A DNA stretch of 64,000 nucleotides, taken from Pristiophorus japonicus (taxonomy: Eukaryota). The position numbers were made by a program, and so were the translations under genes. Position 1 is the stretch's first letter. Every line of letters begins with the position of its first letter. The stretch spans positions 143,468,001 to 143,532,000 of the forward strand of contig NC_091984.1 of NCBI RefSeq assembly GCF_044704955.1. The letters are read 5' to 3'. Shown here piece by piece: positions 23,736 to 47,126 of this stretch. The notes under the pieces were generated by a model. The model was not told the origin of the DNA and made no database searches. It worked only from the letters and a program-made list of their open reading frames with translations.

Positions 23736-24589
23736 AGAATGGGATGGTTTAATCCCAGCAGCTTTTAGTGTCTGTGTTTAATCTTGTGCACTCCAGGGGT
23801 TCGAGGACAAATTGATCGTTTTGAAATGATTGATAATTGGCTTTGAATCAAATCTCCTGCCAACGTGCCATTGATTGACAGCCCACTCAGCCAATCAGGA
23901 CAGACACTTACTGAAATGCAGCCAATCCAGCTGAGGGGGAGGTGGGACATTTCCAAAGCACTCGCCAGACACAGACTAAATATTATTCACATTTATTGCC
24001 TTTTACAGATTCACATTTAGAGAAACAAGATTTGAATAAACAGCCCAGCGAGAGCGAGCTGGAGACATTCACAGGGAGAATGCAGCTTTATTAAAACAGT
24101 TGTGGGGATTTTCTCCACACCGAGAGAATCCTGTCCCTTTAAACGTGGACAAAACCTTGAATTGTAACAGCAGGGTGAGCAGGGAGGGGATCTGCTTACT
24201 GAAGCGGCACTTCGCAGTTTAACATTAGTTTTACTCTGCTGACAGTCTTCAGCATCTTCGAGAGGTTTTACTTGGCAGCACGAGTCAACACTGTCCCATC
24301 AAACCCTCCCAGGGCAGGTACAGCACGGGTCAGATACAGAGTAAAGATCCCTCTACACTGTCCCATCAAACACTCCCAGGGCAGGTACTGAACAGGTTAG
24401 ATACAGAGTAAAGCTCCCTCGACACTGCCCCAATAATGTGCCTTACCCCCTGACCCTCAGATGCTTTCCCTGACCCAGTCCCGAGAAGGAAGAGAGTAGA
24501 AATGCAGTGCTGACAATGACCTTTGTCCTCCCGGCTCACCCCCTGTTCTATTTAAAGTTGCGTCTCCCCCGCGGATTGTCCCTGACACA

Positions 24590-24918
24590 CTACGCACATT
24601 CTGCTCTCCTGACTCCCTTGCTGAGGGGAGAGGAGAGACTCTCGTGGGTGAGGCTGCAGGAGAAGCTGGCGTTGGACTCCCAGTCGGAGCCAGAGAGGGT
24701 CAGCAGGCTGCTGACACTGTAGGTGTTGTCCGAAGCTCGCAGGTAGTCGCTGGTCTGGACCCCGGCCGAAATGGTCGCCCCGTCCTTCTTCCACTCCATC
24801 TCCACCGCATCGGGGTAGAAGTGATCGGCGAGGCACACCAGGGTGGCAGTGCCCTTGGTCGTGACCTCCTCCGGGGAGGGGGGCAGCAGGGTCAGCGTGG
24901 GCGGTGTCTTCCCTCGGC
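24590..24918 (-). CDS. IGKC: Ig kappa-type light-chain constant exon, copy 2 (orphan; no V/J found)
   Basis: Acceptor tttcAG at 24920-24919; RGKTPPTLTLLPPSPEEV..TLVCLADHFYP..W..YSVSSLLTL..FSCSLTHE..RRAECA*; 6 nt differences from copy 1; AATAAA (minus) at 24087-24092 and 23992-23997. Confidence 0.93.
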
Positions 24919-25159
24919 CTGAAAGGGAGGAGAAGGATGTTTAACAGGTGTATATTAGTCTGTGTGTGTGTGTGTGTCACTGTGGGTGTTTCCGTGTGGG
25001 GATAATTCACATCTGATAACGGAGAGTTGGGTTAATGAACTCCTGGCTGGCGATTAACCATTAGAGGCGAGCAACACTAATTCTTAATCTTCTTTGCCTC
25101 GCTTGATAAGTTCAATATAAATATAAATGCGTTTGAAGTTAAGGTATTTAAAAAAAAAA

Positions 25160-25620
25160 ATCTTTCATTTATATTATGCCTTTCACAACCACCGGACATC
25201 TCAAAGCACTTTTCAGCCAATGAAGTACTTTTGGAGTGTCGTCACTGTTGTAATGTGGGAAACACGGCAGTCAATCTGCGCACAGCAAGCTCCCACAAAC
25301 AGCGATGTGATAATGACCTGATAATCTGTTCTTTTGTCATGTTGGTTGAGGGATAAATATTGACCAGGGCACCGGGGAGAACTCCCCTGCTCTTCTTCAA
25401 AATAGGGGCATTGGATCTTTTACATCTACCTGAGAGGGCAGACGAGGCCTCAGTTTAAAATTTCATCTGAAAGACGACACCTCCAACAGTGTTGCACTCA
25501 CTCAGCACTGCCCTGCAGTGTCAGCCTCGATTTTTGTGCTCAAGTGCCTGGTATGGGACTTGAACCCACAACATTCTGAATCAGAAGCGAGAGTGCAACG
25601 CATTGAGCCACGGCTGATGC
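25160..25620 (-). mobile_element. tRNA-derived SINE (mirror copy at ~60020-60445, +)
   Basis: B-box-like GGTTCAAGTCCC on minus strand and a body shared with other copies. Confidence 0.75.
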
Positions 25621-25849
25621 TCAAAATCATACTGGGGTGAGGTCAAGGGTGAGGCTACAATTAGCCTCAGTGTACCAGGGTCAGGCAGGGTCACTGCTCC
25701 CAATGATCCCGTGACCTCCTGGAAGGTCAGAGTGCGCAAACAATGGCCGAGGGTCAGGATCAGGGCCCTCCCACTTCAATGAAAGAAAGCCTTGAATTTA
25801 TATCGCGCCTTTCACAACCTCAGGATGTCCCAAGGTGCTTTACAACCAA

Positions 25850-28800
25850 TTGTACACAGGGAGATTTACGAGGATGTTGCCTGGACTGGAAAATGTTAGC
25901 TATGAAGAAAGATTGGATAGGCTTGGGTTGTTTTCTTTGGAATAGAGGAGTCTGAGGGGAGACCTTATTGAGTTGTATAATATTATGAGGGGCCGAGATA
26001 GAGTGGATAGGACGGACCTATTTCCTTAAGCAGATTGGCCAACAACCAGGGCATAGATTTTAAAGTAATTGCTAGGAGGTTTAGAGGGGATTTGAGGGGA
26101 AATATCTTCACCCAGAGGGGGTGGGGGTCTGGAACTCACTGACTGAAAGGGTGGTAGAGGCAGAAACTCTCATCACTTTTAAAAATTACTTGGATGTACA
26201 CTAGAAGTGCTGTAACCTACAGGGCTACGGACCAAGAGCTGAAAAGTATGATTAGGCTGGATAGATCTTTGCCAGCCAGTGCAGACACGAATGGCCTCCT
26301 TTCATGCTGTAAATTTCTCTGATTCTATGAGCTCCCAGACTGCAATGAGATTATGACCAGATCATCGGCTTTAACTATGTTAGTTGTGGGTTAAATATTG
26401 GCCAGGACACTGGGAAGAACCCCCATGCCCTTCCAATAATGATTATGAGATCTTTCATGTTCACTTAAGAGGGCAGATGGGACTTCGGTTTAACGTCTCA
26501 TCTGAAAGACGGCACCTCTGACAGAGGGAAGATATGTTTGAAGGATCATCAAATGAGGCCATATGGTTTAAACTGATGAACAGAAAAGGGACAATCACAC
26601 TGCTGGGAGTGTACTATCGACCCCTAAACAGTCAGAGGGAGATAGAAGAGAAAATATGTCGGCAAATTGCTGAGAAGTGCAAAAACAATCGGGCAGCAAT
26701 AGTCAGGGATTTCAACTCCCCTCACATTAACTGGGATGGAATCATGTCAAAGGTATAGAGGGTGCAGAATTCTTCAAATGCATTTAGGAGAACTTTTACA
26801 GTCAGTACGTAGCAAGCCCAGCAAGGGAGGCGCGGTTCTTGGCTTAGTTTTTGGAAATGAAGCTGGGCAGGTGGAAGGGAGATCAGTGAGAGAGCATTGT
26901 GGTGCTCGTGATTATAATTCAGTTAGATTTAGTGTAGTTATGGAAAAGGACAAAGATAGAGCAGGAATAAAGGTTCTCAATTGGGGAAAGGCCAATTTTA
27001 CTAAGCTGAGAGGTGATTTAGCAAAAGTGGTCTGGAAACAGCTACTTGAAGGTAAATCAGTGTCAGAGCAGTGGGAGGCATTCAAGGGGGAGATAGTGAG
27101 GGTTCAGAGCAAGTATGTTCCCACAAAGGAAAAGGGTGGCACTCCCAAATCTAGAGCCCCCTGGATGTCAAAGGGCATACAGGATAGGTTATGGCAAAAA
27201 AGGGAAGTTTATGTCAAATACCCAGAGCTAAATACTGCAGAAAGCCCAGAGGTGTATAGAAAGTGCAGGGGTGAAATTAAAAAGGAAATTCGAAATACAA
27301 AGAGAGGGCATAAAAAAATACTGGCAAGTAAAATCAAGGAATACTCAAAGATGTTTTATAAATAAAGAGCAAGAGGATAACTAAAGAAAGAGTTGGGCCT
27401 ATTGGAGACCAAAAAGGTACCCTGTGTGTGGAGGCGGAAGACGGGGGAATGGTTCTTAATGAATATTTTGCATCTGTCTTCACAGAAGAGAGGGACGATG
27501 CAGACATTGTAATTAAGGAGGACAAGTGTGAAATATTAGATGAGATAAACATAGTGAGAGAAGAAGTATTAAGGAGCTTAGCATCTTTGATCGTAGAAAA
27601 ATCACCAGGCCCGGATGAAATGTATCCCAGGCTTTTAAGAGAAGCAAGCGGGGATATAGCAGAGGCTCTGACCATCATTTTCCAATCTACTCTGGCTACA
27701 AGTGTGGTGCCAGAGGACTGGAGGACTGCTAATGTGTACCTTTGTTTGAAAAGTGAGAAAGGGATAGACCGAGTAATTACAGGCCAGTCAGCCGAACCTT
27801 GGTGGAGGGAAAATTATTGGAAACAATAATTGTCATATAGAAAGGGACATATTAATCAAGGACAGTCAGCATGGATTTATTCAGGGAAGGTCGTGCCTGA
27901 CTAACTTGATTTAATTTTTTGCGGAGATAATAAGGAGAGTCGATGAGTTTTGCATCTTTGATGTCGTACACATGGACTTTTGCAAGGTTTTTGGTGAGGT
28001 CTCACATGGCAGAAAAGTAAAAAGCCCAGGGATCCAAGGGAAAGTGGCAAGTTGGATCCAAAATTGGCTCAGTGGCAGGAAGCAAAGTGTAATGATCAAC
28101 GGGTGTTTTTGTGACTGGAAGGCTGTTTCATGTGGGGTTTCAAGCCAGGTTTGCTGATAATACAAAGATGGGAGGAAAAGCAATGTGTGATGAGGATACA
28201 AAAAACCTGCAAAAAGACAGACAGGCAAAGTGAGTGGGCAAAAATTTGGCAGATCGAGTATAATGTTGGAAAGTGTGAGGTTATGCACATTGGCAGAAAA
28301 AAATCAAAGAGCAAGTTATTATTCCAATGGAGAAAAATTGCAAAGTGCTGTAGTACAGCGGGACCTGAGGGTACTTGTGCATGAAACACAAAAGGATAGT
28401 ATGCAGGTACAGCAAGTGGTCTGGAAGGCCAATGGAATCTTGGCCATTAATGCAATGGGGATGGAGTATAAAAGCAGGGAAGTCTAGCTACAGTTATACA
28501 GGGTATTGGTGAGGCCATAGCTGGAATACTGCGTGCAGTTTTGGCTTCAATATTTAAGAAAGGATAGACTTGCTTTGGAGGCAGTTCAGAGAAGGTTCAC
28601 TAGGTTGATTCCAGAGATGAGGGGAGTTGTCTTTTGAAGAAAAGTTGAGTAGGTTGGGCTTCGACTCATTGGAATTCAGAAGAATAAGAGGTGATCTTAT
28701 CAAAACATGTAAGATTATGAGGGGCCATGCAAGGTGGATGCAGAGAGGATGTTTCCACTGATAAGGGAGACTAGAACTAGGGGGCTTAATCTTAGAATAA

Positions 28801-30700
28801 GTGGCCGCCCATTTAAAACTGAGATGAGGAGGAATTTCTTCTCTCAGAATCTTTAACCTCTAAGTATTCTCTAATCTTTGGATTACTCCCGGTGCCGCGA
28901 GCTAGTGAATACAGAAACAGGAGGATAGAGCAGATGAATGTGTGACGGGAGAGATGGTGCAGGCGGGATGCATTAGGTTCCTGAGGCATTGGGACCGCTT
29001 CTGGGGGAGGTGGGACCTGTACAAGCCGACCGGGTTGCTCCTCAACAGAGCCGGGACCAATAGCCACGAGTGGGGCATTTGCTCGTGCTGTTGGGGAGGG
29101 TTTAAACTAGCTTGGCAGGGGGATGGGAACCGGAGAATAGATTCAGTAGGGAGGGAAGTAAAGCTGGAATTAGAAAGCAAAAATAAAGAAAGTGAGTTTG
29201 AAGGAGAGAGGAAACAAGCAGATAAAAAGGGTAAAAAAACAAATTTAAAGGCTCTTTGCCTAAATAACAAAATAGCTGAGTTGATGGCACAAATAGATAC
29301 AAATGAATATGATCTGATAGCCATTACAGAGACGTGGTTGCAAGGTGACCAGGACTGAGAACTAAATACTCAGGAGTCCTTGACAATCCGGAAAGGACAG
29401 ACAGAAAGGTAAAGTAGGTGGGGTAGCTCTGTTGACAAAGGATGGAATTACTGCAATAGTGAGAAATTATATTGGCTCAAATGATCAGGATGTTGAAACT
29501 GTTTGGGAGGAGATAAGGAATAATAAGGGGAAAAAGTCACTGGTGGGCATAGTCTATAGGTCCCCTAACAGTAGCAACTCTGTTGGTCGGAGTATAAACC
29601 AAGAAATAGTGGGGGCCTGTAAAAATGGAACAGCAATAATTATGGGTGATTTTAACCTCCACATTGATTGGATAAATCAAATTGGTCAGGGTAGTCTTGA
29701 GGAAGAGTTCATAGAGTACATAAGGGACGGGTTCCTTGAGCAGTCTGTAATGGAACCAACCAGGGGGCAGGCTATCTTAAATCTGGTCCTGTGTAATGAG
29801 ACAGGATTAGTAAACAATCTCCCAGTAAAGGATCCCCTTGGACTGAGTGATGATAACATGGTTCAATTTCAAATTCAGATGGAGGGTGAGAAAGATGGAT
29901 CTCTAACCAGCGTACTAAGCTTAAATAAAGGAGACTACAAAGGTATAAGTGCAGAGTTGGCTAAAATGGACTGGGAAAATAGATTAAAGTGTAGGACAGC
30001 TGATGAACAGTGGCGTACATATGAAGGAGATATTTCACAACTCTCAAGAAAAATATATTCTAGTGAGGAGGAAAGGGTGCAAAAGAAAAGATAGCCATCC
30101 GTGGCTAACTAAAGAAATAAACAACGGTATCCAATTAAAAACAAGGGCATACAAAGTGGCCAAAACTAGTGGAAGGACAGAAGATTGGGAAGCTTTTAAA
30201 AGCCAACAAAGAATGACTAAAAAAATGATTAAGAAGGGGAAGATAGACGATGAAAGTAAACGAGCACAAAATATAAAAACAGATAGCAAGAGTTTCTATC
30301 GGTATATAAAAAGGAAAAGAGTGGCTAAAGTAAATGATGGTCCCTGAGAGGACAAAACCAGGGAATTAGTGATGAGGAACATGGAGATGGCAGAAACTCT
30401 GAACAAAGATTTTGTATCAGTCTTTACGGTAGAGGACACTGAGATGAGGAGGAATGTTTTCTCTCAGAGGGTTGTAAATCTGTGGAATTTGCTGCCTCAG
30501 AGAGCTGTGGAGGCTGGGTCATTGAATATATTTAAGACAGAGATGGACAGTTTCATAACTGATAAGGGAATAAGGGGTTATGGGGAGCGGGCAGGGAAGT
30601 TGACCTGAGTCCATGATCGGATTGGCCATGATCGTATTAAATGGTGGAGCAGGCTCGAGGGGCTGTGTGGCCTACTCCTGCTCCTATTTCGTATGTTCTT
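25850..30700 (+). mobile_element. Mosaic of CR1 fragments
   Basis: Endonuclease (GVYYRP, GDFN) and RT fragments with several junctions. Confidence 0.85.
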
Positions 30701-30779
30701 AAAATGAGGAGGAGTGGGACTAATTGGGTAAATCTTTCAAAGAGCCGGCACAGGCACGATGGGCCGAATGGCCTCCTTC

Positions 30780-31040
30780 TGTGCTGTAAGATTCTAGTCT
30801 GTGAGCGCGGTTCACAGTTTTCTCCCACGTCATTAACAAACGTACAGCTGTGACAACCTCTCTCTTTCACTTCCTCTGTGGGTGAAGTTTAATTCTTCCG
30901 ATCTGACAATCTCTTCAGTTATTTTTTGCACGGGGGATTTCTGCTGTGGTCTGAGTCTCTAATAATAACGGTCCAATCAGGCAGAATAACAGCAGCTCGG
31001 ACCGGCTAGGACAGCGGACCCAGGCTCAGTGCTGACCCTG
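30780..31040 (-). promoter_or_regulatory. Candidate B-cell enhancer, copy A
   Basis: CAGCTG 30845-30850; EICE tttcacttcctc 30865-30876; GGGGATTTCT 30933-30942; TGTGGT 30945-30950; CTAATAATAA 30959-30968; CCAAT ~30973. Confidence 0.5.
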
Positions 31041-31259
31041 CAACGTCCTCCTCACCAACATCTGGGGACTTGTGCCAAAAGTGGGAGAGCTGCCCCACAG
31101 ACTAGTCAAGCACCAGCCTGACATTGTCCTACTCACAGAATCAGAGCTTTCAGCCAATGTCCTACTGCACCCCCACCACTGACCTTCCTGCCCCCGAAAT
31201 CCGTGAATCCTTAAACAGGAACCCGTTTGAAGAACAGTTTGTATTGAAGTTCTGGGTGT

Positions 31260-34200
31260 GAAAGAGTCTTTGCTGAGAAAACAATCACTATCACGAGAGA
31301 AAAAGTTACTCGGTAAAATAATGGAACTAAAGGTGCACAAGTCCCCTGTACCTGATGGCCTGCATCCTAGGCTCTTAAATGAAGTGGCTGCAGAGATAGT
31401 GGATGCATTGGTTGAAATGCATCAGAGGGTCTAGTGAGGAGGAGGAACTGAAGGATATCCTTGTTCGGCGGGAAATTGTGTAAGTGAAATTGATGGGATT
31501 GAAGGCCGATAAATCCCCGGGGCCTGATAGTCTGCATCCCAGAGTACTTAAGGATGTGGCCCTAGAAATAGCGGATGCATTTGTGATAATTTTCCAACAG
31601 TCTACTGACTCTGGATCAGTTCCTTTGGACTGGAGGGTAGCTAATGCAACACCACTTTTTAAAAAAGGAGGGAGAGAGAAAGTGGATAATTATGGACCGG
31701 TTAGCCTGACATCAGTACTGCGGAAAATGTTGGAATCAATTATTAAGGATGAAATAGCAGCGCAATTGGAAAGCAGTGACAGGATTGGTCCAAGTCAGCA
31801 TGGATTTATAAAGGGGAAATCATGCTTGACAAATCTTCTGGAATGTTTTGAGGATGTAACTGGGAGAGTAGACAAGGGAGAACCAGTGGATGTGGTGTAT
31901 TTGGACTTTCAAAAGGCTTTTGACTAGATCCCACACAGGAGATTGGTGTGCAAAATCAAAGCACTTGGTATTGGGGGTAATATACTGACGCGGATAGAGA
32001 ACTGGTTGGCAGACAGGAAGCAGAGAGTCGGGATAAATTGGTCCTTTTCAGAATGGCAGGCAGTGACTAGTGGAGTGCCACAGGGCTCAGTGCTGGAACC
32101 CCAGCTCTTTACAATATACGTCAATGATTTGGATGAAGGAATCGAGTGTAATATCTCCAAGTTTGCAGATGACACTAAACTGGGTGGCAGTGTGAGCTGT
32201 GAGAGGGACGCTAGGAGGCTGCAGGGTGAATTGGACAGGTTAGGTGAGTGGGCAAATGCATGGCAGATGCAGTATAATGTGGATAAATGTGAGGTTATCC
32301 ACTTTGGGGGTAAAAATGCGAAGACAGAATATTATCTGAATGGTGGCAGATTCGGAAAAGGGGAGGTGCAATGAGACCTGGGTGTCATGGTTCATCAGTC
32401 ATTGAAAGTTGGCACACAGGTACAGCAGGCGGTGAGGAAGGCAAATGGTATGTTGGCCTTCATTGCTAGGCGATTTGAGTACAGGAGCAGGGAGGCCTTA
32501 CTGCAGTTGTACAGGGCCTTAGTGAGGCCTCACCTGGAATATTGTGTTCAGTTTTGGTCTCCTAATCTGAGGAAGGACGTTCTTGCTATTGAGGGAGTGC
32601 AGCGAAGGTTCATCAGACTGATTCCCGGGATGGCTGGACTGACATATGAGGAGAGACTGGATCAACTGGGCCTGTATTCACTGGAGTTTAGAAGGATGAG
32701 ATGGGATCTCATAGAAACATATAAAATTCTGACGAGACTGGACAGGTTAGATGTGGGTAGAATGTTCCCGATGTTGGGGAAGTCCAGAACCAGGGGACAC
32801 AGTCTTAGGATACGGGGTAGGCCATTTAGGACTGCGATGAGGAGAAACTTCTTCAATCAGAGAGTTGTTAACCTGTGGAATTCCCTGCCGCAGAGATTTG
32901 TTGATGCCAGTTCATTAGGTATATTCAAGAGGGAGTTAGATATGGCCCTTACTGCTAAGGGGATCAAGGGATATGGAGAGAAAGCAGGAAAGGGGTACTA
33001 AGGGAATGATCAGCCATGATCTTATTGAATGGTGGTGCAGGCTCGAAGGGCCGAATGGCCTACTCCTGCACCTATTTTCTATGTTTCTATGTAAATCTAC
33101 CAAAGTTCCCTGGATTCTAGAGATGTCCCAGCAGATTGGAAAACTGCAAATATAACGACCCTATTTAAAAAAGGAAGGAGACAGAAAACAGTAAACTATA
33201 GACCAGTTAGCCTAACATCTGTCGTTGGGAAAATGCTGGTGTCCATTATTAAGAAAGCAGTAATAGGACATTTGGAAAAGCATAATTCAGTCAAGCAGAG
33301 TCAGCATGGACTTATGAAAGGGAAATCATGTTTGACACATTTGCTGGAGTTCTTTGAGGAAGTAATGTGCAGGATGGATATGGGGGAACAAGTGGATACG
33401 GTGTATTTGGATTTCCAGAAGGGATTCAATAAGGTGCCACATAAAAGAATACCGCACACGATAAGAGAACACGGGGTTGGTGCTAATACATTAGCATGGT
33501 TCGAGGATTGGCTAACTAACAGAAAACAGAGAGTCAAGATAAATGGGTCATTTTCTGGTCGGCAACCAGTAACTAGTGGGGTTTCACAGGGATCGGTGTT
33601 GGGGCCTCACCTATTTACAATCTATATTAATAACTTGAATGAAAGGACTGAGTGTAAAAAATCGAAGAGCAAATTATTATTTAAATGGAGAAAGATTACA
33701 AAATGCTGTCGGACAGAGGGACCTGGGGGCCCTTGTGCATGAGACACAAAAAGTTAGTATGCAGATACAGCAAGTAATCAGGAAGCAAATGGAATGTTGG
33801 CCTTAATTGCAAGGGGGATGGAGTATAAAAGCAGGGAAGTCCTGCTACATCTGTACAGGGTATTGGTGAGACCACACCGAGAATATTGTGTACAGTTTTG
33901 GTCTCCTTATGTAAGGAGGGATATATTTGCACTGGAGGCAGTTCAGAGAAGGTTCACAAGGTTGATTCCTGAGATGAAGGGGCTGACTTATGAAGAAAGA
34001 TTGAGCAGGTTAATCAGAACATAAGAAATAGGAACAGGAGTAGGACATACGGCCCCTCCGCCATTCAATAAGGTCATGGCTGATCTGATCATGGACTCAG
34101 CTCAACTTCCACGCTCGCTCCACATATTCTTGTAAACTCCAAAGAGTATGAGAGGTGAACTTATTGAAACATATAAGATTCTGAGGGGATTCGACAAGAT

Positions 34201-37200
34201 AGATGCAGTGAGGATGTTTCCACTCATAGGGGAACCAAGAACGAGCGGGCAGAGTTTAAGTATAAGGGGTCGGTCATTTGGAACTGAGATGAGGAGGAAT
34301 TTCTTCTCTCAGAGGGTTGTAAATCTGTGCAATTCTCTGCCCCAGAGAGCTGTGGAGGCTGGGTCAGTGAATATATTGAAGGTGGAGATAGAAAGATTTT
34401 TGAACGATAAGGCAGTAAAGGGTTCTGGGTAGCAGGCAGGGAAGTGGAGCTGAGCCCATTATCAGATCAGCCATGATCTTATTGAATGGCGGAGCAGGCT
34501 CGAGGGGCCAAATGGCCTAATCCTGCTCCTATTTCTTATGTTCTGATGATTCTTTGGCCTAGAATTTCCCTGGTCCAGCACCAGCTAATAAGAGGGTTTT
34601 GTTCAAATAATTGGTTCAAAGGCAGGAAGCAAAGGGTAATAGTTAACGAGTGTTTTTGTGACTGGAAGGCTGTTTCCAGTGGGGTTCCGCAGGTCTCAGT
34701 ACTAGGTCCCTTGCTTTTTGTGGTATATATCAATGACTTGGACTTGAATGTAAGGGGCATGATCAAGAATTTTGCAATTGAAACTAAAATTGGCCGTGTG
34801 GTTGATAATGAAGAAGAAAGCTGTAGACTGCAGGAAGATATCAATTAAATGGTCAGGTGGGCAGAACAGGGCAAATGGAATTCAATCCGGAGTAGTGTGA
34901 GGTAATGCATTTGGGGAGGGCTAACAAGGCAAGGGAATACACATTAACTGGTACGACACTGAAAAGTGCAGAGAAACAAAGGGACCTTGGAGTACAGGTC
35001 CACAGATCCCTGATGGTAGCAGGTCAGGAAGGTAAGATGGTTAAGAAAGCATGTGGAATACTTGCCTTTATTCGACGAGGCATGAATACAAGAGCAAGGA
35101 CATTATGCTTAAACTGTATAAAACACTGGTTAGGCCACAGCAGGAGTACTTTCGTGCATTTCTGGTCACTACATTACATTACATTACAAGAAAGATGTGA
35201 TTGCACTGGAAAGGGTGCAGAGGATGCAGAGGTTACAGGGCTACGGACAGAGAGCTGGAAAGTGGGATGAGGCTGGATAGCTCTTGATCAGCCGGTGCAG
35301 ACACGGTGGGCCGAAACGGATTCCCTCCGTGCTGTGAATTTCTATCATGGACAGATGCATCTACAACAGGCAGATTGTTGAGGACGAGGTCAAGTAGGTT
35401 TTTCCCTCGTGTTGGTTCTCTCCCCATCTGCTCTGGGCCCAGTCTGGCAGATATGTCATAGAATCATAGAATCACAGAGGTTTACAGCACAGAAGGAGGC
35501 CATTTCAGACCATCATATCCGCGCCACCCAACAAAGAGCTATCCAGCCTAATCCCACTTTCCAGCTCTGGGTCCATAGCCCTGCAGGTTACAGAACTTCA
35601 AGTGCACATCCAAGTACTTTTTAAATGTGGTGAGGGTTTCTGCCTCTACTAATGAAGGACCTAATATTCCAGGTCCTGACCTACATCCTGAAGGGTGGAG
35701 GATGCTTGTGCGTGGATTTTTTTTAACATGTGGTGACCATTGCACACCAGCCTTCACACGGGCTCGACAGAGCTAGGTCTTGGTCCAGTGGCAAGGGTTA
35801 ACCAGGACGACTGGAGACCTGCTCTGCTGTACGGACCGAGTGTGCACACATATCACAGTGTGGGCTGGCCCGTGCTACCCCTGGGCCCCTGGCCACACCC
35901 CCACGACACTCTGGGTGAAGAAATTTCCCCTCAAGTCCCCTCCAATCACTTTAAATCTATGCCCCCTGATTGTTGAGCTGGAGGAGGAAATTCAGAAACT
36001 CCAACCCTGAGTTCAAGCACAGACCATTGCTTCTTTGAGTATGAATTGAAGCATAATTAAAGTTACATGCTCTGTTGAAGATTTTGTTCATGGGAAAAAA
36101 ACTTATTTTATTGTAGGAGAGAGCAATTTCAGGTAATATTTGTGTGTCTGGCTAACAGAAATAGGTCCATCCTACCAATTCTTTCCAGGCCCCTCATAAT
36201 TTTGTACACCTCAATCAGGTCTCCCCTCAGCCTCCTCTGTCCAAAGAAAACAAACCCAGCCTATCCCATCGTTCCTCATAGTTAAAATTCTCCAGTCCAG
36301 GCAACATCCTCATATATCCTCTCCACCCTCGGTTTAACGTCCCATCCGAAGAAATCGTACTGTTAATGAAACACTGAAGGCAAGAACTTTGAAGTGGTGG
36401 GAATACTCAATGTATCAAGACAGGAACATTGTAAACATTGATTGTGACATCATGCACTCACAATCTCCCCATAGTATGCACAATGTGAGCACCAGACCCG
36501 AGGACAGAACCCAAGGAGATGTGCCCAGCACCAATCCAGGACAATGATCAATGTAAAGCCAAAGCTGAATGTTATCAGGGCTGCTTTGCCGATGATTGCC
36601 CTGTGATCGCGGGCACCAGCAGCACACACACCTCTTGTGGGTACAGTCGTGTTGTGGTTATGTTGCTGCAGAGCACTCCACAGGCCTGCAATAATAATCC
36701 CCACAATCTCACCATGGCCCTTTGACTATTTCAATTCAGCTCTTTTTTAAATTCTGGAAATAAAAAGCTGGACTCAGTAAAAGTGACCACAAAGCTGTCA
36801 AATTGTCACAAAAGCCCAATTGGTTCACTGACATCCTTTAGGGAAGGAAACCTGCCGTCCTTGCCACATAAAAGGTTGCTGCCCAAGATAAGAGCTCACG
36901 GGGTTGGGGGTAATATATTAGCATGGATAGAGGATTGGCTAACTAACAGCAAACAGAGAGTCAGGATAAATGGGTCATTTTCAGGTCGGCAAATTGTAAT
37001 AAGTGGGGTGCCGCAGGGATCAGTGCTGGGGCCTCAACTATTTACAACCTATATTAATGACTTGAATGAAGGGACCGAGTGTAATGTAACCAAATTTGCT
37101 GATGTACAAAGATAGGTGAGAAAGCAAGTTGTGAGGAAGGCACAAAGATTCTGCAAATGGATATAGACAGGCTGAGTGAGTGGACAAAGATTTGGCAGAT

Positions 37201-37880
37201 GGAGTATAATGTTGGAAAATGTGAATTTATCCACTTTGGTAGGAAAAATAATTATTATTTAAATGGGGAAAGATTACAAAATGCTGTGGTACAGTTCATT
37301 GATATCTTCCTGCAGTCTACAGCTTTCTTCTTCATTATCAACCATAGCCGAGTTTAGTATCATCTGCAAACTTAGTATCATCTGTAATCATTCTCCCTAC
37401 ATTCAAGTCTAAATCATTGATATATACCACAAAAAGCCAGGGACCCAGCACTGATCCCTGCCGAGCCCCACTGGAAACAGCCTGCCAGTCACAAAAACAC
37501 CCATCAACCATTACCCTCTGCTTCCTGCCTCTGAACCAATTTTGGATCCAACTTGTCACTTTGTCCTGGATCCCATGGGCTTTTACTTTTGTGACCAGTC
37601 TGCTGTGTGGGACCTTCTCAAAAGCCTTGTTAAAATCCAAATACACTGCATCATATGCACTGCCCTCATCGACCCTCCTGGTTATCTCCTCAAAAAATTC
37701 AATCAAGTTATTCAGACACGACCTTCCCTTAACAAATCCATGCTGACTATCCTTGATTAATCCGTGTTTTGTTAAATGAAGATTCCTCCTATCCCGCCCC
37801 CGAGGTTAGGCTGACTGACCTGTAGTGACTCGATCTATCCCTTGCTCCCTTTTTAAACAAAGGTACCACGTTTGCAGTCC
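31260..37880. mobile_element. CR1-dominated mosaic, including a long RT-to-3'-tail copy at ~31420-33090 (+)
   Basis: ORFs 31484..33001, 33233..34848, 36783..37706 are CR1 RT pieces. Confidence 0.85.
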
Positions 37881-38329
37881 TCCAGTCCTCCGGTACCTGG
37901 GATTGCAATGTCAGCATCGCCCCTCTCGGCCAGCTCGGTCAGTAATGGTGCTACCGAGACACTCTTGGTGATGGACAGTGAAGTCCCCCACCCAGAGTAC
38001 ATTCTGTACCCTTGCTACTCTGCGTGCTTCTTCCAAGTGGTGTTCAACATGGAGGAGTACTAATTCATCAGCTGGGGGAGGGCGGGAGGTGGTAATCAGC
38101 AGGAGGTTTCATTGACCTGATGCCATGAGACTTCATGGGGTCCGGAGTCAATGTTGAGGACTCCCAGGGCCACTCCCTCCCGACTGTATACCACTGAGCC
38201 GCCACCTCGGGTGATGGAGGAATCTGGGACATTGGCTGAAAGGTCTGATTCTGTGAGTAGGACAATGTCAGGCTGGTGCTTGACTAGTCTGTGGGGCAGC
38301 TCTCTCACTTTTGACACTTTTGGTGAGGC

Positions 38330-38590
38330 GGACGTTGCAGGGTCAGCACTGAGCCTGGGTCCACTGTCCGAGCCGGTCCGAGCTGCTGTTATTCTGCCTG
38401 ATTGGGCGGTTATTATTAGAGACTCAGACCACAGCAGAAATCCCCCGTGCAAAAAATAACTGAAGAGACTGACAGATCGGAAGAATGAAACTTCAGCCAC
38501 AGAGGAAGTGAAAGAGGGAGGTTGTCACAGCTGTACGTTTATTAGTGACACAGGAGAAAACTGCGAACTGCGCTCACAGCCTAGAATCTT
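38330..38590 (+). promoter_or_regulatory. Candidate B-cell enhancer, copy B (inverted duplicate of copy A)
   Basis: ttattattag 38410-38419; accaca 38428-38433; agaaatcccc 38436-38445; GAGGAAGTGAAA 38502-38513; CAGCTG 38528-38533. Confidence 0.5.
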
Positions 38591-39199
38591 ACAGCACAGA
38601 AGGAGGCCATTCGGCCCATCGTGCCTGTGCTGGCTCTTTGACAGAATTACCCAATTAGTCCCACCCCCCCTCTATTTCCCCGTAACCCAGCAAATTGTTC
38701 CTTTTCAAGTATATATCCAATTCCCTCTTGCAGACCTGGGCCCACAGCATTAGATTGCCCCTAACCTGGGCACCACATTGGCATCTCATTCATTCACTGG
38801 GACAGGAAATGCCTGGTGTGGGAAATGGAGTCCAGGGCTCTGAACATTCCCTCTCCTCTCCTGAGGAAGTCTTCATGCTGGGGTCCAGTTCCATGGGCCC
38901 CGACAGCACATTCCGACCTCACCTACTTCCTCATTCCACGTGTGTAAGCCTGGACCCTATCACCAGGATATCTGACTGCAGGAGGCCTCACCACTGTGTC
39001 CAGCACTGTCCTCACCCGAAATCCACACACAGTCTGCATTGATCTGGGGCCTTTAACGTGCCAAAGGTCACAAGACACTTATCATCGCTGTTGTAAGAAC
39101 GTGGGGAACGGGGGTTCGGGGGGCTTTAGGAAGGGTGATTGAAGGCCTGGGTGCAAGGATGGCGTTAGCTGGAGGAGAGAGAGCTGGAGAGGGGGAGGG

Positions 39200-41690
39200 A
39201 TTAGAACATAAGAAATAGGAGCAGGAGTAGGCCTACGGCCCCTCGAGCCTGCTCCACCTTTTAATATGATCATGGCTGATCCGATCATGGACTCAGCTCC
39301 ACTTTCCTGCTTGCTCTCCATAACTCCTTATTCCCTTATCGGTTAAGAAACTGTCTATTTCTGTCTTAAATTTATTCAATGACCCATCTTCCACAACTCT
39401 CTGAGGCAGCGAATTCCACAGATTTACAACCCTCAGAGAAGAAATTCCTCCACATTTCAGTTTTAAATGGGCGGCCCCTTATTCTAAGATTATGCCTCCT
39501 AGTTCTTGTCTCCCCTATCAGTGGAAACAGCCTCTGCATCCACCTTGTCAAGCACCCTCATAATCTTACATGTTTCGATAAGATTACCTTTCATTCTTCT
39601 GATTTCCATTCAGTATAGGCCCAACCTACTCAACCTTTCCTCATAAGTCATTGCCCTCATCTACGGAATCAACCTAGTGAACCTTCTCTGAATGCCTCCA
39701 AAGCAAGTGTATCCTTTCTTAAATATGGAAACCAAAACTGCACGCAGTATTCCAGTTGTCGCTTCACCAATACCCGGTATAACTGTAGCAAACACTTCCT
39801 TGCATTTATACTCTATCCCCTTTGCAATAAAGGCCAAGATTGCATTGGCCTTCCTGATCACTTGCTGAACCTGCATAATAAACTTTTGTGTTTCATGCAC
39901 CAGGACCCCCAGTTCCCGCTGTACTGCAACACTTTGTTATTTTTCTCCATTTAAATAATAACTTGCTCTTTGATTTTTTTCTGACAAAGTGTATAACCTC
40001 ACACTTTCCAACATTATATTCCATCTGCCAAATTTTTGCCCATTCACTTAGCCTGTCTATGTCCTTTTGCAGGTTTTTTGTTTCCTCCTCATACATTGTG
40101 TTTACTCCTTTCTTTATATTGTCAGCAAACTTGGCTACATTACACTCGGTTCCTTCTTCCAAGTCGTTGATATAGATTGTAAATAATTGGGGTCCCAGCA
40201 CTGATTTCTGCGGCATCCCACTAGTGACTGATTGCCAACCCGAGAATGAACCATTTATCACGACTCTGTTTTCTGTTAGTTAGCCAATCCTCTATCCATG
40301 TTTATATATTACCCCCAACTCCGTGAACTTTTATCCTGTGCCTTTAATGTGGCACCTTATTGAATGCCTTCTGGAAATCCAAATACACCACATCCACTGG
40401 TTCCCCTTTATCCACCCTGCTTATAACATCCTCAAAGAATTCCAGCAAATTTGTCAAACATGACTTCCCCTTCATAAATCCATTCTGACTCTGCCTGACT
40501 GAATTATGTTTTTCCAAATGTACTGCTACTATTTCTTTAATATTTTCCCAACCACAGATGTTAGGCTAACTGTTCTCTAGTTTCCTGTTTTTTGTCTGCA
40601 TCCTTTTTTTAATATGGGCATTACATTTGCAGTTTTCCAATCTGCTGGGATCTCCCCAGAATCCAGGGAATTTCGGTAAATTACAACCAATGCATCCACT
40701 ATCCCTGTCATTACTTCTCTTAAGACCCTAGAATGCAAGCCATCAGGTCCAGTGGATTTATCCGCCTTTAGTCCCATTATCTTACTGAGAACCACCTCCT
40801 TAGTGATTGTGATTGTGTGAAGTTCCTCTCCCCCCCCCCCCCCCCATAGACCCCTGACTATGCACTGTTGGGATATTTTTAGTGTCCTCTACTGTAAAGA
40901 TTGCTACAAAATATTTGCTCAGTGTTTCTGCCATCTCCATGTTCCCCATGTTCCCCATCACTAATTCCCCGGTCTCGTCCTCTAAGGGACCAACATTTAT
41001 TTTATCCGCTCTTTTCCTTTTTATATACCTGTAGAAACTCTTGCTATCTGTTTTTATATTTTGTGCTAGTTTACTTTCATCTTCCATTTCTTAATCATTT
41101 TTTTAGTCATTCTTTGCTGGATTTTAAAAGCTTCCCAGTCTTCTGTCCTCCCACTAATTTTGGCCACCTTGTATGCCCTTGTTTTTAAATTGGATACCGT
41201 CCTTTATTTCTTTAGTTAGCCACGGATGGCTATCTTTTTTTTTTACATCCTTTCCATCTCACTGGAATATATTTTTCTTGAGAGTGATTAAATATCTCCT
41301 CAAATGTACGTCACTGTTCATTAACCGTCCTACATTTTAATCTATTTTCCCAGTCCATTTTAACCAACTCTGCCCTCATACTTTTGTAGTCTCCTTTATT
41401 TAATCTTAGTATACTAGTTTGAGATTCAACTTTCTCGCCCTCGATCTAAATTTGAAATTCAACCATGATATGGTCTCTCATTCCAAGGGGATCCTTTACT
41501 GGGAGATTGTTTATTAATCCTGTCTCATTGCACAAGACCAGATCTAAGATAGCCTGCCCCCGGTTAGTTTCTTTACATACTGTACAAGGAACCCATCCCT
41601 TATGCACTCTATCAACTCTTCTTCAAGGCTACCCTGACCAATTTGATTTGTCCAATCAATGTGTAGGTTAAAATCACCCATTACAATCAT
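39200..41690 (-). mobile_element. CR1 LINE (degraded ORF2)
   Basis: ORFs 39661..41087 on minus strand; 3' tail at ~39200. Confidence 0.88.
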
Positions 41691-41699
41691 ACCATGAGA

Positions 41700-42357
41700 A
41701 CTTCCAGTGCGAGCTGCTCCAAGTGAGCGATGGCTTCGAAGTGGGTGATTGGGTGATGGGGTGATGTCATCAGGACCCAGGTCGGCATTTGGAGCGTGGG
41801 CAGGAACATCGGCGGACCCAGGTAAAGCAGAGGAGTGGGAAGGTCGCGGGGAGGTGTGGTGAGTGATCGAGGTGGAGGAGCGATGAGGGATCGTGGCTGA
41901 GATTCAGTTGGTGATCGTGGCGGAAGTCCGGCAAATGTTTGGCGCAGAGGTGCGGCGAGAGATCGTGGCGGAGGTGCGGCGAATGTTGGTGGCGGAGGAG
42001 CGCTGAGGGATCATGGTGGAGGTGCGGCAAATGAGGGTTCGGGGCCCAAAAGAGCCGAGGGCCCAGGGGCAGCACGGGCCAGCCCACACTGCGATATGTA
42101 AGCGCACTGGGTCCGTGCAGAGCAGGCCTCCAGTCATCCGGGTTAATCTTTGCCACTGGATAAAGGCCTAGCTCTGTCAAGCCCGTGTGGTGGCTGATGT
42201 GCAACGGTCACCACGTTAAAAAAAATCCATGCACAGGCATCTTCCAGCCCCTCAGTTGGAGTTCAGGACTGGATCATCGGGTCCTTCATTGAAACATCTG
42301 TGAACTCAGTTGGAAGCAAGTCATCCTCGTTCGAGGGACCGCCAATGATGATGATGA
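41700..42357 (+). mobile_element. Non-autonomous RTE-tailed element
   Basis: Ends ggaagcaagtcatcctcgttcgagggaccgcc..(GAT)n like the RTE at ~23690-23735; partial inverted copy at ~35690-35890. Confidence 0.6.
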
Positions 42358-42450
42358 GTAGGTCAGTGAGGTCAGGGGCAGTAGGTCAGTGAGGTGAGAG
42401 GTAGTAGGTCAGTGAGGTCAGGGGCAGTAGGTCAGTGAGGTCAGGGTTCA
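42358..42450. repeat. 23-bp tandem repeat x4 containing AGGTCA half-sites
   Basis: aggtcagtgagg at 42360, 42383, 42406, 42429. Confidence 0.85.
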
Positions 42451-43449
42451 TATTGGAGTGAGGCAGGGTACGGACACTGCATTTTGGAAAGTTGGGGTTT
42501 ATGGAGAGCGGATGAAGGAAGCCAGGAGGGGACAACGAAATAATCGAGTTTAGAGATGAGACTGCACACAGGGAGGTTAAAGTAATAGTGACCTCAGTCT
42601 TTATCAAGACATTCCAAAGTGAGGAACAGGCCTTAGGGGCTGGCTTATATACAGTGCTCCCAAGGGATGCTGGGATCCCTTGGGACTTCAGGGGATGTGC
42701 TCCCTGGTGGCAGAACATGGGAGTGCATGCTTTACAGATACACAACAGAGCCAAGCAGAGCCATGGGTTTCTTCCATCAAGGGGCTGATGTAGGGCGGAG
42801 ATGGGCAATGTTGGAGATGGAAATAAGAGGATGTGGCGTACGAAGCTCAGTCTTTGGAGAACCAATAGGAAGGAGCCATGTTTCCTGGTCCCTAGTGGAA
42901 GAGCGGCACCCTTCAGTGAGAAAACCAAGGCCTGTCTGAGGCAGGTATTGTGACGGTCAGAGGTCCATTTTGTGGAAGGAGGAAAGGTCAGAGAGACCAC
43001 AGACATTGTGCTCACCATGGACTCCGCCGCTGAGTGGGGTCAGCGGCCGGAAGGAGGCCAGAGCGTCGCCAGGGGCGACGGAGGCCCGAGCGTCGCCGGG
43101 GGGGGGGGGGGCGGGGGGAGGAAGGGAGGCCCGAGCATCGCCGAGGGGGGAGGGAGGGAGGGAGGCCCGTACTTTAGGGTGAGGAGTGAAGGTCGGGCCC
43201 AAACCTGTGGATGGGGCGGATCGGAGGCTCACAGCCGTTGAGTTCGCCGGGATAGGTTGGAGCAGCTGAGTCGGCCAATGGGGAGTGAGAAGCGAGGGTC
43301 CAGCTGGAGGGACATGGCAGCAGGCAGGTCGACCTGGAAGGTAGGCCGAGGATGGGCGATGGGCAGTGGGACCTTGCGTACAGGATTTTAGGGATTTAGC
43401 GGTAGGTAAAATACTTACACCGCAGTCAATCCACCTACGGCCCAAGCAC

Positions 43450-44290
43450 CCAAGGCCCCACCCCACTGCTGGCCAAGAACGAGGAGACACTGAGGCAGTC
43501 AGAACCTGCTGGAAGGAACACTTTGAAGATCTCCTCAATCGAGAATCTGCCTTAGATCTGAGTGTCCTCGACTCCATCCCGCAGCATGCTACCCATCACC
43601 TTCTCAGTAAAACCCCAGCCCTGCACGAGGTTGAAAAGGCCATCTGTCAGCTCAAGAACAATAAGGCATCGGGGACGGATGGAATCCCCGCTGAGGCATT
43701 AATGTATGGCAGAGCGTCACTATTGACATGAATTTATGACCTCATCTCTCTCATCTTGAGGGAGGAGAGCATGCCGGGAGATCGCAGAGATGCAGTAATC
43801 GTGATCCATCTTTAAAAAAGGGGACAAGTCCGACTGCGGCAACAGCAGAGGAATCTCCCTGTTATCAGCCATTGGGAAAGTCATCGCGAGAATCCTCCTC
43901 AACCGTCTTCTCCCTGTGGCTGAGGAGCTCCTGCCGGAGTCACAATGCGGATTCCGTCCACTACGGAGTACAACGGACATGATATTTACAGCGCGACAAC
44001 TGCAAGAGAAAAGCAGGGAACAGCACCAACCCTTGTCCATGGCCGCCTTTGAACTTACAATGGCCTTTGACACTGTTAACCGCGAGGGTCTGTGGAGCGT
44101 CCTCCTCCGTTTCGGCTGCCCCCAAAAGTTTGTCCCCATTCTCAGCCTGCACCACGACGACATGCAAGCCATGGTCCTAACCAACGGATCCATCATAGAC
44201 GCAATCCACATTCGGACCGGAGTCAAGCAGGGCTGCGTCAACGCACAAAACCGATTCTCGATCTTCCTGACGACAATGCTCCACCTCACA
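43450..44290 (+). mobile_element. RTE-clade LINE RT fragment
   Basis: KASGTDGIPAE, LPESQCGFRPLRSTTDMIF, GVKQGC. Confidence 0.88.
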
Positions 44291-44675
44291 CTATTGGAGA
44301 ACCAATAGGAAGGAGCCATGTTTCCTGGTCCCTATTGGAGGACCAATAGGAAGGAGCCATGTTTCCTGGTTCCTATTGGGGGACCAATAGGAAGGAGCCA
44401 TGTTTACTTGTCCCGATTGGGGGACCAATAGGAAGGTATCATGTTTCATGCGACCTATTCGAGGACCAATAGGAAGGAGCCATGTTTCCTGGGCCCTATT
44501 CGAGGACCAATAGGAAGGAACCATGGTTCCTGGTCCCTATTGGGGGACCAATAGGAAGGAACGATGTTTCCTGGTCCCTATTGGGGGACGAATAGGAAGG
44601 AGCCATGTTTCCTGGCCCCTATTGGAGGACCTATAGGAAGGTGCTATGTTTTGTGGGCCCGATTGGAGAACCAGT
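44291..44675. repeat. 41-bp tandem repeat, ~9.5 units, each with a ctattgg/ccaatag hairpin
   Basis: ccaat at 44302, 44343, 44384, 44425, 44466, 44507, 44548. Confidence 0.92.
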
Positions 44676-44819
44676 GGGATGTGGAGTGTGCATCCGTCAT
44701 GTTGTAAATGTTGGATCATCGGCACCTGATCCCAGCAAAAATATCCTGACCTGGAGAGGGGCCATGGAAGGGGAAAGGATTCGTAGGTGTTGTGAGCGGA
44801 AAGGATGGAGCAGTGGGTC

Positions 44820-46510
44820 ATAGAAACATAGAAACATAGAAAATAGGTGCAGGAGCAGGCCATTCAGCCCTTCTAGCCTGCACCGCCATTCAATGAGTTC
44901 ATGGCTGAACATGAAACTTCAGTACCTCCTTCCTGCTTTCTCGCCATAACCCTTGATCCCCCGAGTAGTAAGGACTTCATCTAACTCTCTTTTGAATATA
45001 TTTAGTGAATTGGCCTCAACTACTTTCTGTGGTAGAGAATTCCACAGGTTCACCACTCTCTGGGTGAAGAAGTTTCTCCTCATCTCGGTCCTAAATGGCT
45101 TATCCCTTATCCTCAGACTGTGACCCCTGGTTCTGGACTTCCCCAACATTGGGAACATTCTTTCTGCATCTAACCTGTCTAAACCAATCAGAATTTTAAA
45201 CGTTTCTATGAGGTCCCCTCTCATTCTTCTGAACTCCAGTGAATACAAGCCCAGTTGATCCAATCTTTCTTGATAGGTCAGTCCCGCCATCCCGGGAATC
45301 AGTCTGGTGAACCTTCGCTGCACTCCCTCAATAGCAAGAATGTCCTTCCTCAAGTTAGGAGACCAAAACTGTACACAATACTCCAGCTGTGGCCTCACCA
45401 AGGCCCTGTACAACTGTAGCAACACCTCCCTGCCCCTGTATTCAAATCCCCTTGCTATGAAGGCCAACATGCCATTTGCTTTCTTAACCGCCTGCTGTAC
45501 CTGCATGCTAACCTTCAATGACTGATGTACCATGACACCCAGGTCTCGTTGCACCTTCCCTTTTCCTAATCTGTCACCATTCAGATAATAGTCTGTCTCT
45601 CTGTTTTTACCACCAAAGTGGATAACCTCACATTTATCCACATTATACTTCATCTGCCATGCATTTGCCCACTCACCTAACCTATCCAAGTCACTCTGCA
45701 GCCTAATAGCATCCTCCTCGCAGCTCACACTGCCACCCAACTTAGTATCATCCGCAAATTTGGAGATACTGCATTTAATCCCCTCGTCTAAATCATTAAT
45801 GTACAATGTAAACAGCTGGGGCCCCAGCACAGAACCTTGCGGCACTCCACTAGTCACTGCCTGCCATTCTGAAAAGTACCCGTTTACTCCTACTCTTTGC
45901 TTCCTGTCTGACAACCAGTTCTCAATCCACGTCAGCACACTACCCCCAATCCCATGTGCTTTAACTTTGCACATTAATTTCTTGTGTGGGACCTTGTCGA
46001 AAGCCTTCTGAAAGTCCAAATATACCACATCAACTGGTTCTCCTTTGTCCACTTTACTGGAAACATCCTCAAAAAATTCCAGAAGATTTGTCAAGCATGA
46101 TTTCCCTTTCACAAATCCATGCTGACTTGGACCTATCATGTCACCATTTTCCAGATGCACTGCTATGACATCCTTAATAATTGATTCCATCATTTTACCC
46201 ACTACTGAGGTCAGGCTGACCGGTCTATAATTCCCTGTTTTCTCTCTCCCTCCTTTTTTAAAAAGTGGGGTTACATTGGCTACCCTCCACTCCATAGGAA
46301 CTGATCCAGAGTCAATGGAATGTTGGAAAATGACTGTCAATGCATCCGCTATTTCCAAGGCCACCTCCTTAAGTACTCTAGGATGCAGTCCATCAGGCCC
46401 TGGGGATTTATCGGCCTTCAATCCCATCAATTTCCCCAACACAATTTCCCGACTAATAAAGATTTCCCTCAGTTCCCCCTCCTTACTAGACCCTCTGACC
46501 CCTTTTATAT
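44820..46510 (-). mobile_element. Young 5'-truncated CR1 with an uninterrupted 507-aa RT/C-terminal ORF
   Basis: ORF 44919..46442; (catagaaa)n tail; possible TSD ggtca at 44816-44820 and 46513-46517. Confidence 0.93.
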
Positions 46511-46895
46511 CCGGTCAGATCCTGTCCTGTCGCTCCAGCTCACACTGATGGGGTGAGGATCTCCACCCTCTGCTGGGCCTTCATGAAACCAGCTTTCTGT
46601 CCAAACCGGTCCCCACTGAGAAAAGGCCCTTAATTTGGCAATAAACAGCCAGTGTACTGAGAGAGGCCAAGGGATGGCCACTGTGGGGAATGGGGCCTTA
46701 CTCCAGGAGAATGCATGCTCTGGGGTCAAGGGTTAACATCCATCGGTGGGGCAGGGCACAGGGAGGTTTATTCTGCATTTCAGTATGCTGCACCGGGGAG
46801 TCTGTGGGGAAGGGAGAGTGGAAACGGGGAGAGAGAGGCTATGAATCAGAGACAGAGAGGTGTAGAGGAAAGCTGTGAGACATAGAGCAATGAAG

Positions 46896-46941
<46 letters not shown>

Positions 46942-46970
46942 ACCGGGAAGGAGATGGAGGGAGAGAAGAA

Positions 46971-47067
46971 GAGGAAGTGAAATGTGCTGACGTGGCTTTC
47001 TCTGGGTGAAGACATTTACATACTGAGGGATGGGCAATGAGGCTCTCACAGGCTGCAGGTTTATAAA
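46971..47067 (+). promoter_or_regulatory. V-gene promoter
   Basis: EICE GAGGAAGTGAAA 46971-46982; TGACGT 46988-46993; octamer variant ATTTACAT 47014-47021; TATAAA 47062-47067; (GA)n immediately upstream. Confidence 0.7.
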
Positions 47068-47126
47068 GCAGAGCCCAGTGAAGGGTAGTTTATCAGTAAG
47101 CAGGCACAGGGACAGGAGCAGACACC

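Follow-up and report, generated by a model that had tools for sequence, protein, structure and literature searches.

A possible lymphoid regulatory module in an inverted duplication of an immunoglobulin kappa cluster of Pristiophorus japonicus

Shark immunoglobulin (Ig) genes are arranged in many small autonomous clusters, each of which must somehow be activated, excluded and made a target of hypermutation. The locus described here raises the question of how this is done for a kappa light chain. It is located in a stretch of 64,000 nt of the Pristiophorus japonicus genome (assembly GCF_044704955.1, contig NC_091984.1, positions 143,468,001–143,532,000 of the forward strand), hereafter called the window, and contains an island of about 250 bp, present twice in inverted orientation, in which motifs known from tetrapod light-chain enhancers are clustered. 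A first-pass annotation of this DNA had proposed that the island is a B-cell enhancer, one for each kappa cluster. Our leading, though tentative, reading is that it is a lymphoid regulatory module of the kappa-cluster unit, which would act on the cluster from upstream as an enhancer and might in addition target hypermutation. The architecture of the locus, i.e. an inverted duplication, the loss of the variable (V) and joining (J) segments from one arm, and an island placed between two pieces of long interspersed nuclear elements (LINEs), is assigned with high confidence.

Motif content of the island

Copy A of the island (positions 30798 to about 31045, forward strand) and copy B (about 38325 to 38581, reverse strand) are around 93% identical when 30798–31045 is aligned with 38581–38325. 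The two had been described as an island occurring twice, inverted, amid LINE debris, a description that holds. No third copy was found within the window by blastn. Rfam (gathering and E-value thresholds) and ARAGORN gave zero matches in or around the island, which would therefore lack the head of a short interspersed nuclear element (SINE) and any known RNA gene; it contains no recognisable LINE, SINE or RNA-gene sequence. A SINE or other small dispersed repeat was considered as its identity and rejected, on the grounds that there is no tRNA or Rfam match and that the adjoining LINE tail lies 5′ of the island rather than 3′ of it.

The six motif types listed in the first-pass annotation were all located in both copies by pattern matching, within a motif core of 133 bp (30845–30977 in copy A, 38401–38533 in copy B). 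At one end of the core is a CCAAT motif (30973 in copy A, 38401 in copy B), next to a MEF2 consensus site, CTAATAATAA, of the form YTAWWWWTAR (30959–30968 and 38410–38419). This is followed by a RUNX/CBF core, TGTGGTC (30945–30951, forward strand, and 38427–38433, reverse strand), situated between the MEF2 site and a kB-like site, GGGGATTTCT (30933–30942, forward, and 38436–38445, reverse), which is one mismatch away from GGGRNYYYCC. After a gap of 56 bp comes the composite site for PU.1/Spi and IRF factors (EICE), an exact match to the 12-mer GAGGAAGTGAAA (30865–30876, reverse, and 38502–38513, forward), and after a further gap of about 14–15 bp an E-box of the CASSTG type, CAGCTG (30845–30850 and 38528–38533). 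The perfect EICE and the perfect MEF2 site are 83 bp apart in both copies.

In the window, the short motifs are common: CCAAT is present 204 times, TGTGGT 61 times and CAGCTG 27 times. The strict EICE pattern, GGAANNGAAA, has three matches, of which two are in the islands and the third is in the promoter region of the V gene, and the perfect MEF2 consensus has five. Two of the MEF2 sites outside the islands are found at 47735–47744, just 3′ of the V recombination signal, and at 60485–60494, in the intron between J and the constant (C) exon, 200 bp upstream of the latter.

Clustering of the motifs was compared with chance in two ways. Stretches of 150 bp that contain at least five of the six motif types are confined to the two islands, and none of 200 simulated 64-kb Markov-1 sequences brought all six together within that distance, for a motif set that had been picked after the sequence was seen. 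The second set was taken from the literature on Ig-lambda enhancers and consists of CASSTG, GGGRNYYYCC (with at most one mismatch), YTAWWWWTAR and GGAANNGAAA, all within 150 bp. Again no place in the window other than the two islands has this combination, and among 400 simulated 64-kb sequences two contain such a place; the thresholds were chosen after the island had been seen, so that the real significance of this rarity is weaker than the count implies. The four-site combination is still unusual, in a locus where it would be expected, and in the island the four site types and the RUNX/CBF core are all contained within 133 bp.

The third exact copy of GAGGAAGTGAAA (46971–46982, forward strand) is located beside a (GA)n run, 155 bp 5′ of the leader ATG at 47128, in agreement with the earlier statement that the V promoter carries the same 12-mer. 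In the region 46880–47130, the order of elements is the (GA)n run, the EICE, an octamer variant, ATTTACAT (47014–47021), a TATA-like sequence, TTTATAAA (at about 47061), and the ATG; the EICE is 32 bp 5′ of the octamer variant and about 80 bp 5′ of the TATA-like sequence. There is no perfect octamer in this region. Beyond the 12-mer, the island and the V upstream region have no similarity, their local alignment score being within the range of shuffled sequences.

The set of sites in the island resembles that of known light-chain enhancers. The Ig-lambda enhancers of human, mouse and chicken have an E-box and sites for NFkB, MEF2 and a composite PU.1–IRF4 in common, with poorly conserved spacers, and mutation of these sites impairs or abolishes hypermutation-targeting activity; in addition, the chicken 3′Core element contains a putative CBF site (Buerstedde et al. 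2014, PMC3972084). Like the island, the core of these enhancers (cIg-lambda-E of chicken, E-lambda of human and mouse), which also acts as a hypermutation-targeting (DIVAC) element, is compact, about 130–200 bp, and has the same four site types. The likeness to mammalian light-chain enhancers claimed earlier for the EICE is supported, the motif set of the island matching the conserved Ig-lambda enhancer core (PMC3972084). Differences are also evident. The Ig-lambda enhancers are located 3′ of C, whereas the island is 5′ of V; their order of sites is E-box, NFkB, MEF2 and PU.1/IRF4, whereas that of the island is MEF2, RUNX, kB, EICE and E-box, with an imperfect kB site; and the island is present once per small V-J-C cluster, plus once in a mirror arm devoid of V. 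Since position, order and multiplicity all differ, and the likeness is one of motifs and no sequence homology is shown, the island should not be filed as an orthologue of the tetrapod enhancer. The mammalian Ig-kappa 3′ enhancer also belongs to a kappa-type locus and, going by a supplementary legend of PMC3972084, has a conserved PU.1–IRF4 composite, an E-box and an NFkB site. It differs in being downstream of C-kappa in a translocon locus and, in what that paper lists, in having no conserved MEF2 site; here too the comparison is one of motifs. No description of an enhancer of a cartilaginous-fish Ig cluster was found in the literature searched, the coverage of which was incomplete, and the words "enhancer" and "promoter" are absent from a 2016 review of fish immunoglobulins (PMC5192425).

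If the island is a regulatory module, its composite site would be occupied by PU.1 or Spi-B together with IRF4 or IRF8, its CAGCTG by an E protein, and the neighbouring sites by MEF2, Rel/NF-kB and RUNX factors. Acting together, these factors would make the cluster accessible to transcription and rearrangement and perhaps, by analogy with the tetrapod Ig enhancers, mark it for somatic hypermutation. The two copies would have arisen when the cluster and its upstream region were duplicated in inverted orientation, V and J being lost later from one arm. Factor binding and enhancer activity are inferred here from the motifs. PU.1-family factors are reportedly present in cartilaginous fish (Anderson et al. 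2001, PNAS, as cited in PMC5192425).

The inverted duplication and the flanks of the island

The whole kappa cluster has undergone a large inverted segmental duplication, and the two islands sit at the inner ends of its arms. The earlier reading was right in that there are two inverted copies of the island; it missed that the pair is part of a far larger duplication, with copy A located in an arm without V. The left arm (22323–31162, forward) contains an orphan C exon and has neither V nor J. The right arm (38227–62110, reverse) contains a complete kappa cluster, with its genes on the forward strand. Between the arms is a spacer of 7 kb made up of LINE debris. Seven colinear inverted blocks relate 22.3–31.2 kb to 62.1–38.2 kb, with identities of 87–94%. 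They include 23736–24365 paired with 61807–61175 (94%), 24352–25635 with 61255–60006 (91%), 25631–28139 with 59701–57197 (88.6%), 28143–28847 with 40136–39432 (87%), 30438–30699 with 39461–39203 (88.5%) and 30702–31162 with 38677–38227 (91.6%, across 462 columns). The limit of the duplication, 31162/38227, falls within a LINE endonuclease frame. Two independent insertions of the island were also considered and are rejected, as the colinear inverted blocks reach far past the islands.

In the right arm, the V gene extends from the leader ATG at 47128 to the end of the V exon at 47663 and is followed by a recombination signal with a 12-nt spacer (CACTGTG-12-ACAAAAACC, ending at about 47693). The J segment (about 49091–49132, forward strand) encodes FGKGTKLRLSK, and the C exon occupies 60685–61014 on the forward strand. 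Between V and J, tandem units of about 64 bp, 89% identical, are present at 48255–48428, with a related inverted copy at 56008–56190. The orphan C-kappa exon of the left arm (24593–24922, reverse strand) is intact and has 97% protein identity to the C exon of the right arm. Measured to the leader ATG, copy B of the island is 8.5 kb 5′ of V, as had been reported; copy A is 5.9 kb 5′ of the orphan C exon.

The left arm lacks the counterpart of the right-arm interval 40137–57196, a stretch of 17 kb which holds V and J. At 28139–28143 (forward strand) it contains a chimeric LINE join: sequence up to 28139 matches the right arm from 57197 upwards, and sequence from 28143 onwards matches the right arm up to 40136. 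The first part of the chimera matches the LINE beside right-arm position 57197 (ending in NGCFCDWKAVSCGV), while the second part is from a different LINE subfamily, found beside right-arm position 40136 (FADN...LQKD...EWAKIWQ). Both right-arm LINEs extend beyond the join point, and the simplest reading of the sequences is therefore that V and J were lost by a deletion between two LINE copies, leaving the orphan C exon. The left arm is also interrupted by 1.6 kb of a LINE 5′ portion (28848–30437, with an ORF1-like region, i.e. resembling a first open reading frame, and an endonuclease), which is 87.7% identical to right-arm 41681–40881 and is out of order; it follows that the left arm has been rearranged beyond a simple deletion.

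Around the islands, a repeat search of the window gave two pairs of inverted-repeat arms, 30701–31058 with 38320–38677 (358 nt, 93% complementary) and 31072–31162 with 38227–38317 (97%), which blastn merges into the single block 30702–31162/38677–38227. The shared unit thus exceeds the repeat unit of about 260 bp that had been noted before: the island is real, and the unit runs from the 3′ tail of one LINE through the island and into the first 120 nt or so of a LINE endonuclease frame. Directly 5′ of copy A is the 3′ tail of LINE X (30702–30797, forward; ...GGGCCGAATGGCCT...AAGATTCTA), of which the last 95 nt or so, ending in GGGCCGAATGGCCTCCTTCTGTGCTGTAAGATTCTA, are found at 30702–30797 and 38677–38582. 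Directly 5′ of copy B, LINE X is a fragment (38582–38739, reverse), 5′-truncated at about 38739, which contains the carboxy-terminus of ORF2 (...KRELDIYLKRNNLLGYG) through to the tail. A candidate target-site duplication surrounds this fragment, GCTGTGGGC at 38748–38740 and GCTGTGAGC at 38580–38572. The LINE tail motif GGCACGATGGGCCGAATGGCCTCCTTCTGTGCTGTAA (38588–38641 and 30740–30790) is followed in most copies by short repeats of the type ...TGATTCTATGAT. At the very start of the island (30799–30817; 38580–38562 in copy B), and overlapping the candidate target-site duplication, is an eight-pair hairpin, CTGTGAGCGCGGTTCACAG, followed by TTTTCT; it was the sole product of a scan for bacterial promoters and terminators, a count within chance expectation, and has two changes in copy B.

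Beyond LINE X is a unique non-LINE stretch of about 450 bp (38749–39207, reverse strand), which is deleted in the left arm and has no other copy in the window. A genuine target-site duplication would mean that the island and 39207–38749 once formed an unbroken sequence, this stretch having probably been joined to island B before LINE X inserted.

On the 3′ side of island B, a decayed amino-terminal frame of a LINE APE-type endonuclease (37914–38324, reverse) follows directly. In copy A only 31046–31162 remains, reading LTNIWGLVPKVGELPHRLVKHQPDIVLLTESEL; in copy B the frame has an 11-bp deletion and frameshifts and runs down to 37914 (...GDFTVHHQECLGSTITDRAG). The match to Pfam Exo_endo_phos does not reach the curated cut-off (E=0.015; for P0004, a more intact relative that is 65% identical, E=0.0014), and the assignment as an endonuclease is considered probable. 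In both copies the frame begins within about ten codons of the 3′ end of the island, in the same orientation as the island, and is preceded by an in-frame TGA seven codons before LTNIWGL, with neither an ATG nor an ORF1.

With the duplication in view, conservation of the motifs in both copies loses its weight. For the 133 bp of the motif core the identity of the two arms is 94.7%, which is to be compared with 451 windows of the same length taken from the remaining non-coding blocks. These have a mean identity of 89%, and 12.9% of them are at least as conserved as the core, placing it at the 87th percentile; the core thus does not stand out clearly from the non-coding background. Wherever the two copies differ, the difference lies outside the motifs, and the five between the E-box and the MEF2 site are all in spacers, an arrangement with a chance of about 0.1. 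As a single duplication event gave both copies, the shared flanks and the motifs kept in both are accounted for by that event and are no evidence of selection. The retention of the motifs in both copies, which had been pointed out earlier, is explained by the young duplication, 13% of background windows being at least as conserved. The observed-to-expected ratio of CpG is 0.6–0.7 in the island, 0.40 in the window and 0.22–0.35 in the surrounding comparison stretches, a retention which, at ten CpGs, is only suggestive.

Copies in other sequence collections and weighing of the enhancer reading

A look-up of DNA reads showed that eight coded organisms hold 20–45% of the sampled words of 37914–38677. 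Contigs of four of them (organisms A, B, C and G) were aligned to 37400–39000 at identities of at least 85%. Very many contigs of each of the four species match the reverse-transcriptase, endonuclease and tail parts of the LINEs, the LINE tail motif mentioned above being the most abundant part of the examined stretch in their contigs. The island (38318–38533) is covered in organism A only. There, each listed position of the island is matched by three to six contigs, whose individual word depths are several hundred; the contig word depth does not equal copy number. Single diverged LINE-variant contigs have depths of 9–27, and the comparison with the hundreds seen for the island points to multiple copies of it in organism A, probably tens to hundreds. 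At the boundary between endonuclease and island, the summed contig depth in organism A drops about 40-fold, and further steps in depth are seen at about 38750 and 38582, the edges of the LINE X fragment. The part of the unique stretch from 38750 to 39000 has a depth in organism A of the same order as the island. In organisms B, C and G there is no contig of at least 85% identity over the island; as contigs demonstrate presence and not absence, this counts moderately against deep conservation and proves nothing. A contig of organism C covers 38698–39000 at 90% identity with a depth of 268 and crosses the truncation junction of LINE X, so that organism C shares that part of the unit.

At 38406, 38541, 38545, 38552, 38564 and 38569, every contig of organism A differs from copy B and carries the letter of copy A. 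It follows that copy A lies near the family consensus and that at least six changes, at 38541–38569 and 38406 and partly at CpG sites, are private to copy B. A protein word search with the open reading frame that crosses island B gave no candidates, in a database that holds almost no shark sequence, and exact-pattern scans of metagenome and prokaryote contig collections gave zero matches.

Several of these observations weigh against an enhancer. The missing contigs in three species and the background-like identity of the core have been mentioned, as has the choice of thresholds after the fact. Copy B, which lies beside an intact V, is more decayed than copy A in the arm without V. Both copies are outside the J–C intron and are not 3′ of C, unlike tetrapod enhancers, and the order of their sites departs from that of the lambda enhancers. 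The kB-like site has T in its final position, where the consensus has C, and kB sites with at most one mismatch are common, with 152 in the window. Finally, the island abuts the start of a LINE endonuclease, which is compatible with an origin as a transposon promoter.

A number of these points would also be expected if the island were an inert passenger, that is intergenic DNA caught between LINE insertions and made multi-copy through amplification of the kappa unit, its motif cluster being a coincidence recognised after the fact. We regard this as unlikely, though it is the alternative that survives best. All blocks of the duplication, LINE debris included, are 87–94% identical and the island is no outlier among them; its unique neighbour of 450 bp has the same order of contig depth in organism A; three other species yield no island contig; copy B is the more decayed of the two; and CCAAT, TGTGGT and CAGCTG are common in the window. 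What a passenger does not readily explain is that the four-site set drawn from the literature appears in only 2 of 400 simulations and nowhere else in the window, that a perfect EICE and a perfect MEF2 site, each rare, are yet 83 bp apart in both copies, and that CpG retention in the island is above that of the surrounding comparison stretches.

The enhancer reading therefore remains the one we tentatively favour for the island of this locus. A broader proposal, that each shark kappa cluster has one such module upstream of V, with a light-chain grammar shared with tetrapods and inherited from the jawed-vertebrate ancestor, and maybe with a role in targeting hypermutation, is a doubtful extension. 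The per-cluster arrangement put forward in the first-pass annotation agrees with one copy in each arm of the duplicated cluster and with multiple copies in organism A; the lack of an island contig in the three other species speaks moderately against deep conservation of the island. If the broader proposal were true, a 250-bp module of tetrapod grammar in each kappa cluster would make cluster control directly testable, and the light-chain enhancer grammar would date to the origin of jawed vertebrates.

Possible transposon origins and the constant-exon search

A second alternative takes the island as the 5′ untranslated region (UTR) or internal promoter of the LINE whose endonuclease adjoins it, from a lineage-specific subfamily, with any effect on the kappa cluster being incidental or co-opted. 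LINE 5′ UTRs carry sites for RUNX and other factors, as in human L1. Like such promoters, the island directly precedes, in the same orientation, the start of an endonuclease of the APE type (LTNIWGLVPKVGELPHRLVKHQPDIVLLTESEL, within about ten codons), is dense in sites, retains CpG above its flanks and is multi-copy in one lineage. Its presence in organism A and lack of contigs in three endonuclease-rich species is the pattern of fast-changing LINE 5′ ends, and 5′ truncation together with fast turnover of the 5′ UTR could explain both this and the drop in depth. On the other hand, the copy number of the island is unlike that of the adjoining LINE, as indicated by the same 40-fold drop at their boundary; the conserved start has an in-frame stop seven codons ahead of it, and both a start codon and an ORF1 are lacking; the candidate target-site duplication ties the 5′ end of the island to unique non-LINE DNA, with which it seems to be continuous; and no further copy of that LINE is present in the window. 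Since the duplication explains the shared flanks, and given the depth drop and the candidate target-site duplication, a dispersed LINE 5′ UTR has been downgraded and is considered improbable, more so than an inert passenger. Were either of these two explanations correct, the locus would be an ordinary one, of interest mainly because it documents how an orphan C-kappa exon arose by inverted duplication and a later LINE–LINE join.

Most improbable of all is a regulatory fragment of another transposon, such as the U3 enhancer of a solo long terminal repeat (LTR), caught between LINE insertions: retroviral LTR enhancers do combine ETS, RUNX, E-box and CCAAT sites, a retrovirus-like pol has been noted at 1–2329 of the window and multiple copies of the island are seen in one lineage only, but the island has no similarity to the rest of the window, the surroundings of 1–2329 included, no terminal repeats or LTR ends were recognised in it, and the candidate target-site duplication points instead to an island once joined to the 450-bp stretch.

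A protein search with the C exon, in a database with little shark sequence, gave one teleost protein and two shark-like fragments filed under bacterial assemblies. The latter, P0001 and P0002, are 81–84% identical to the shark C-kappa exon and come from short contigs (507 and 990 nt) in assemblies of Aeromonas veronii and Salmonella enterica; contamination of these bacterial records by shark DNA is the almost certain cause.

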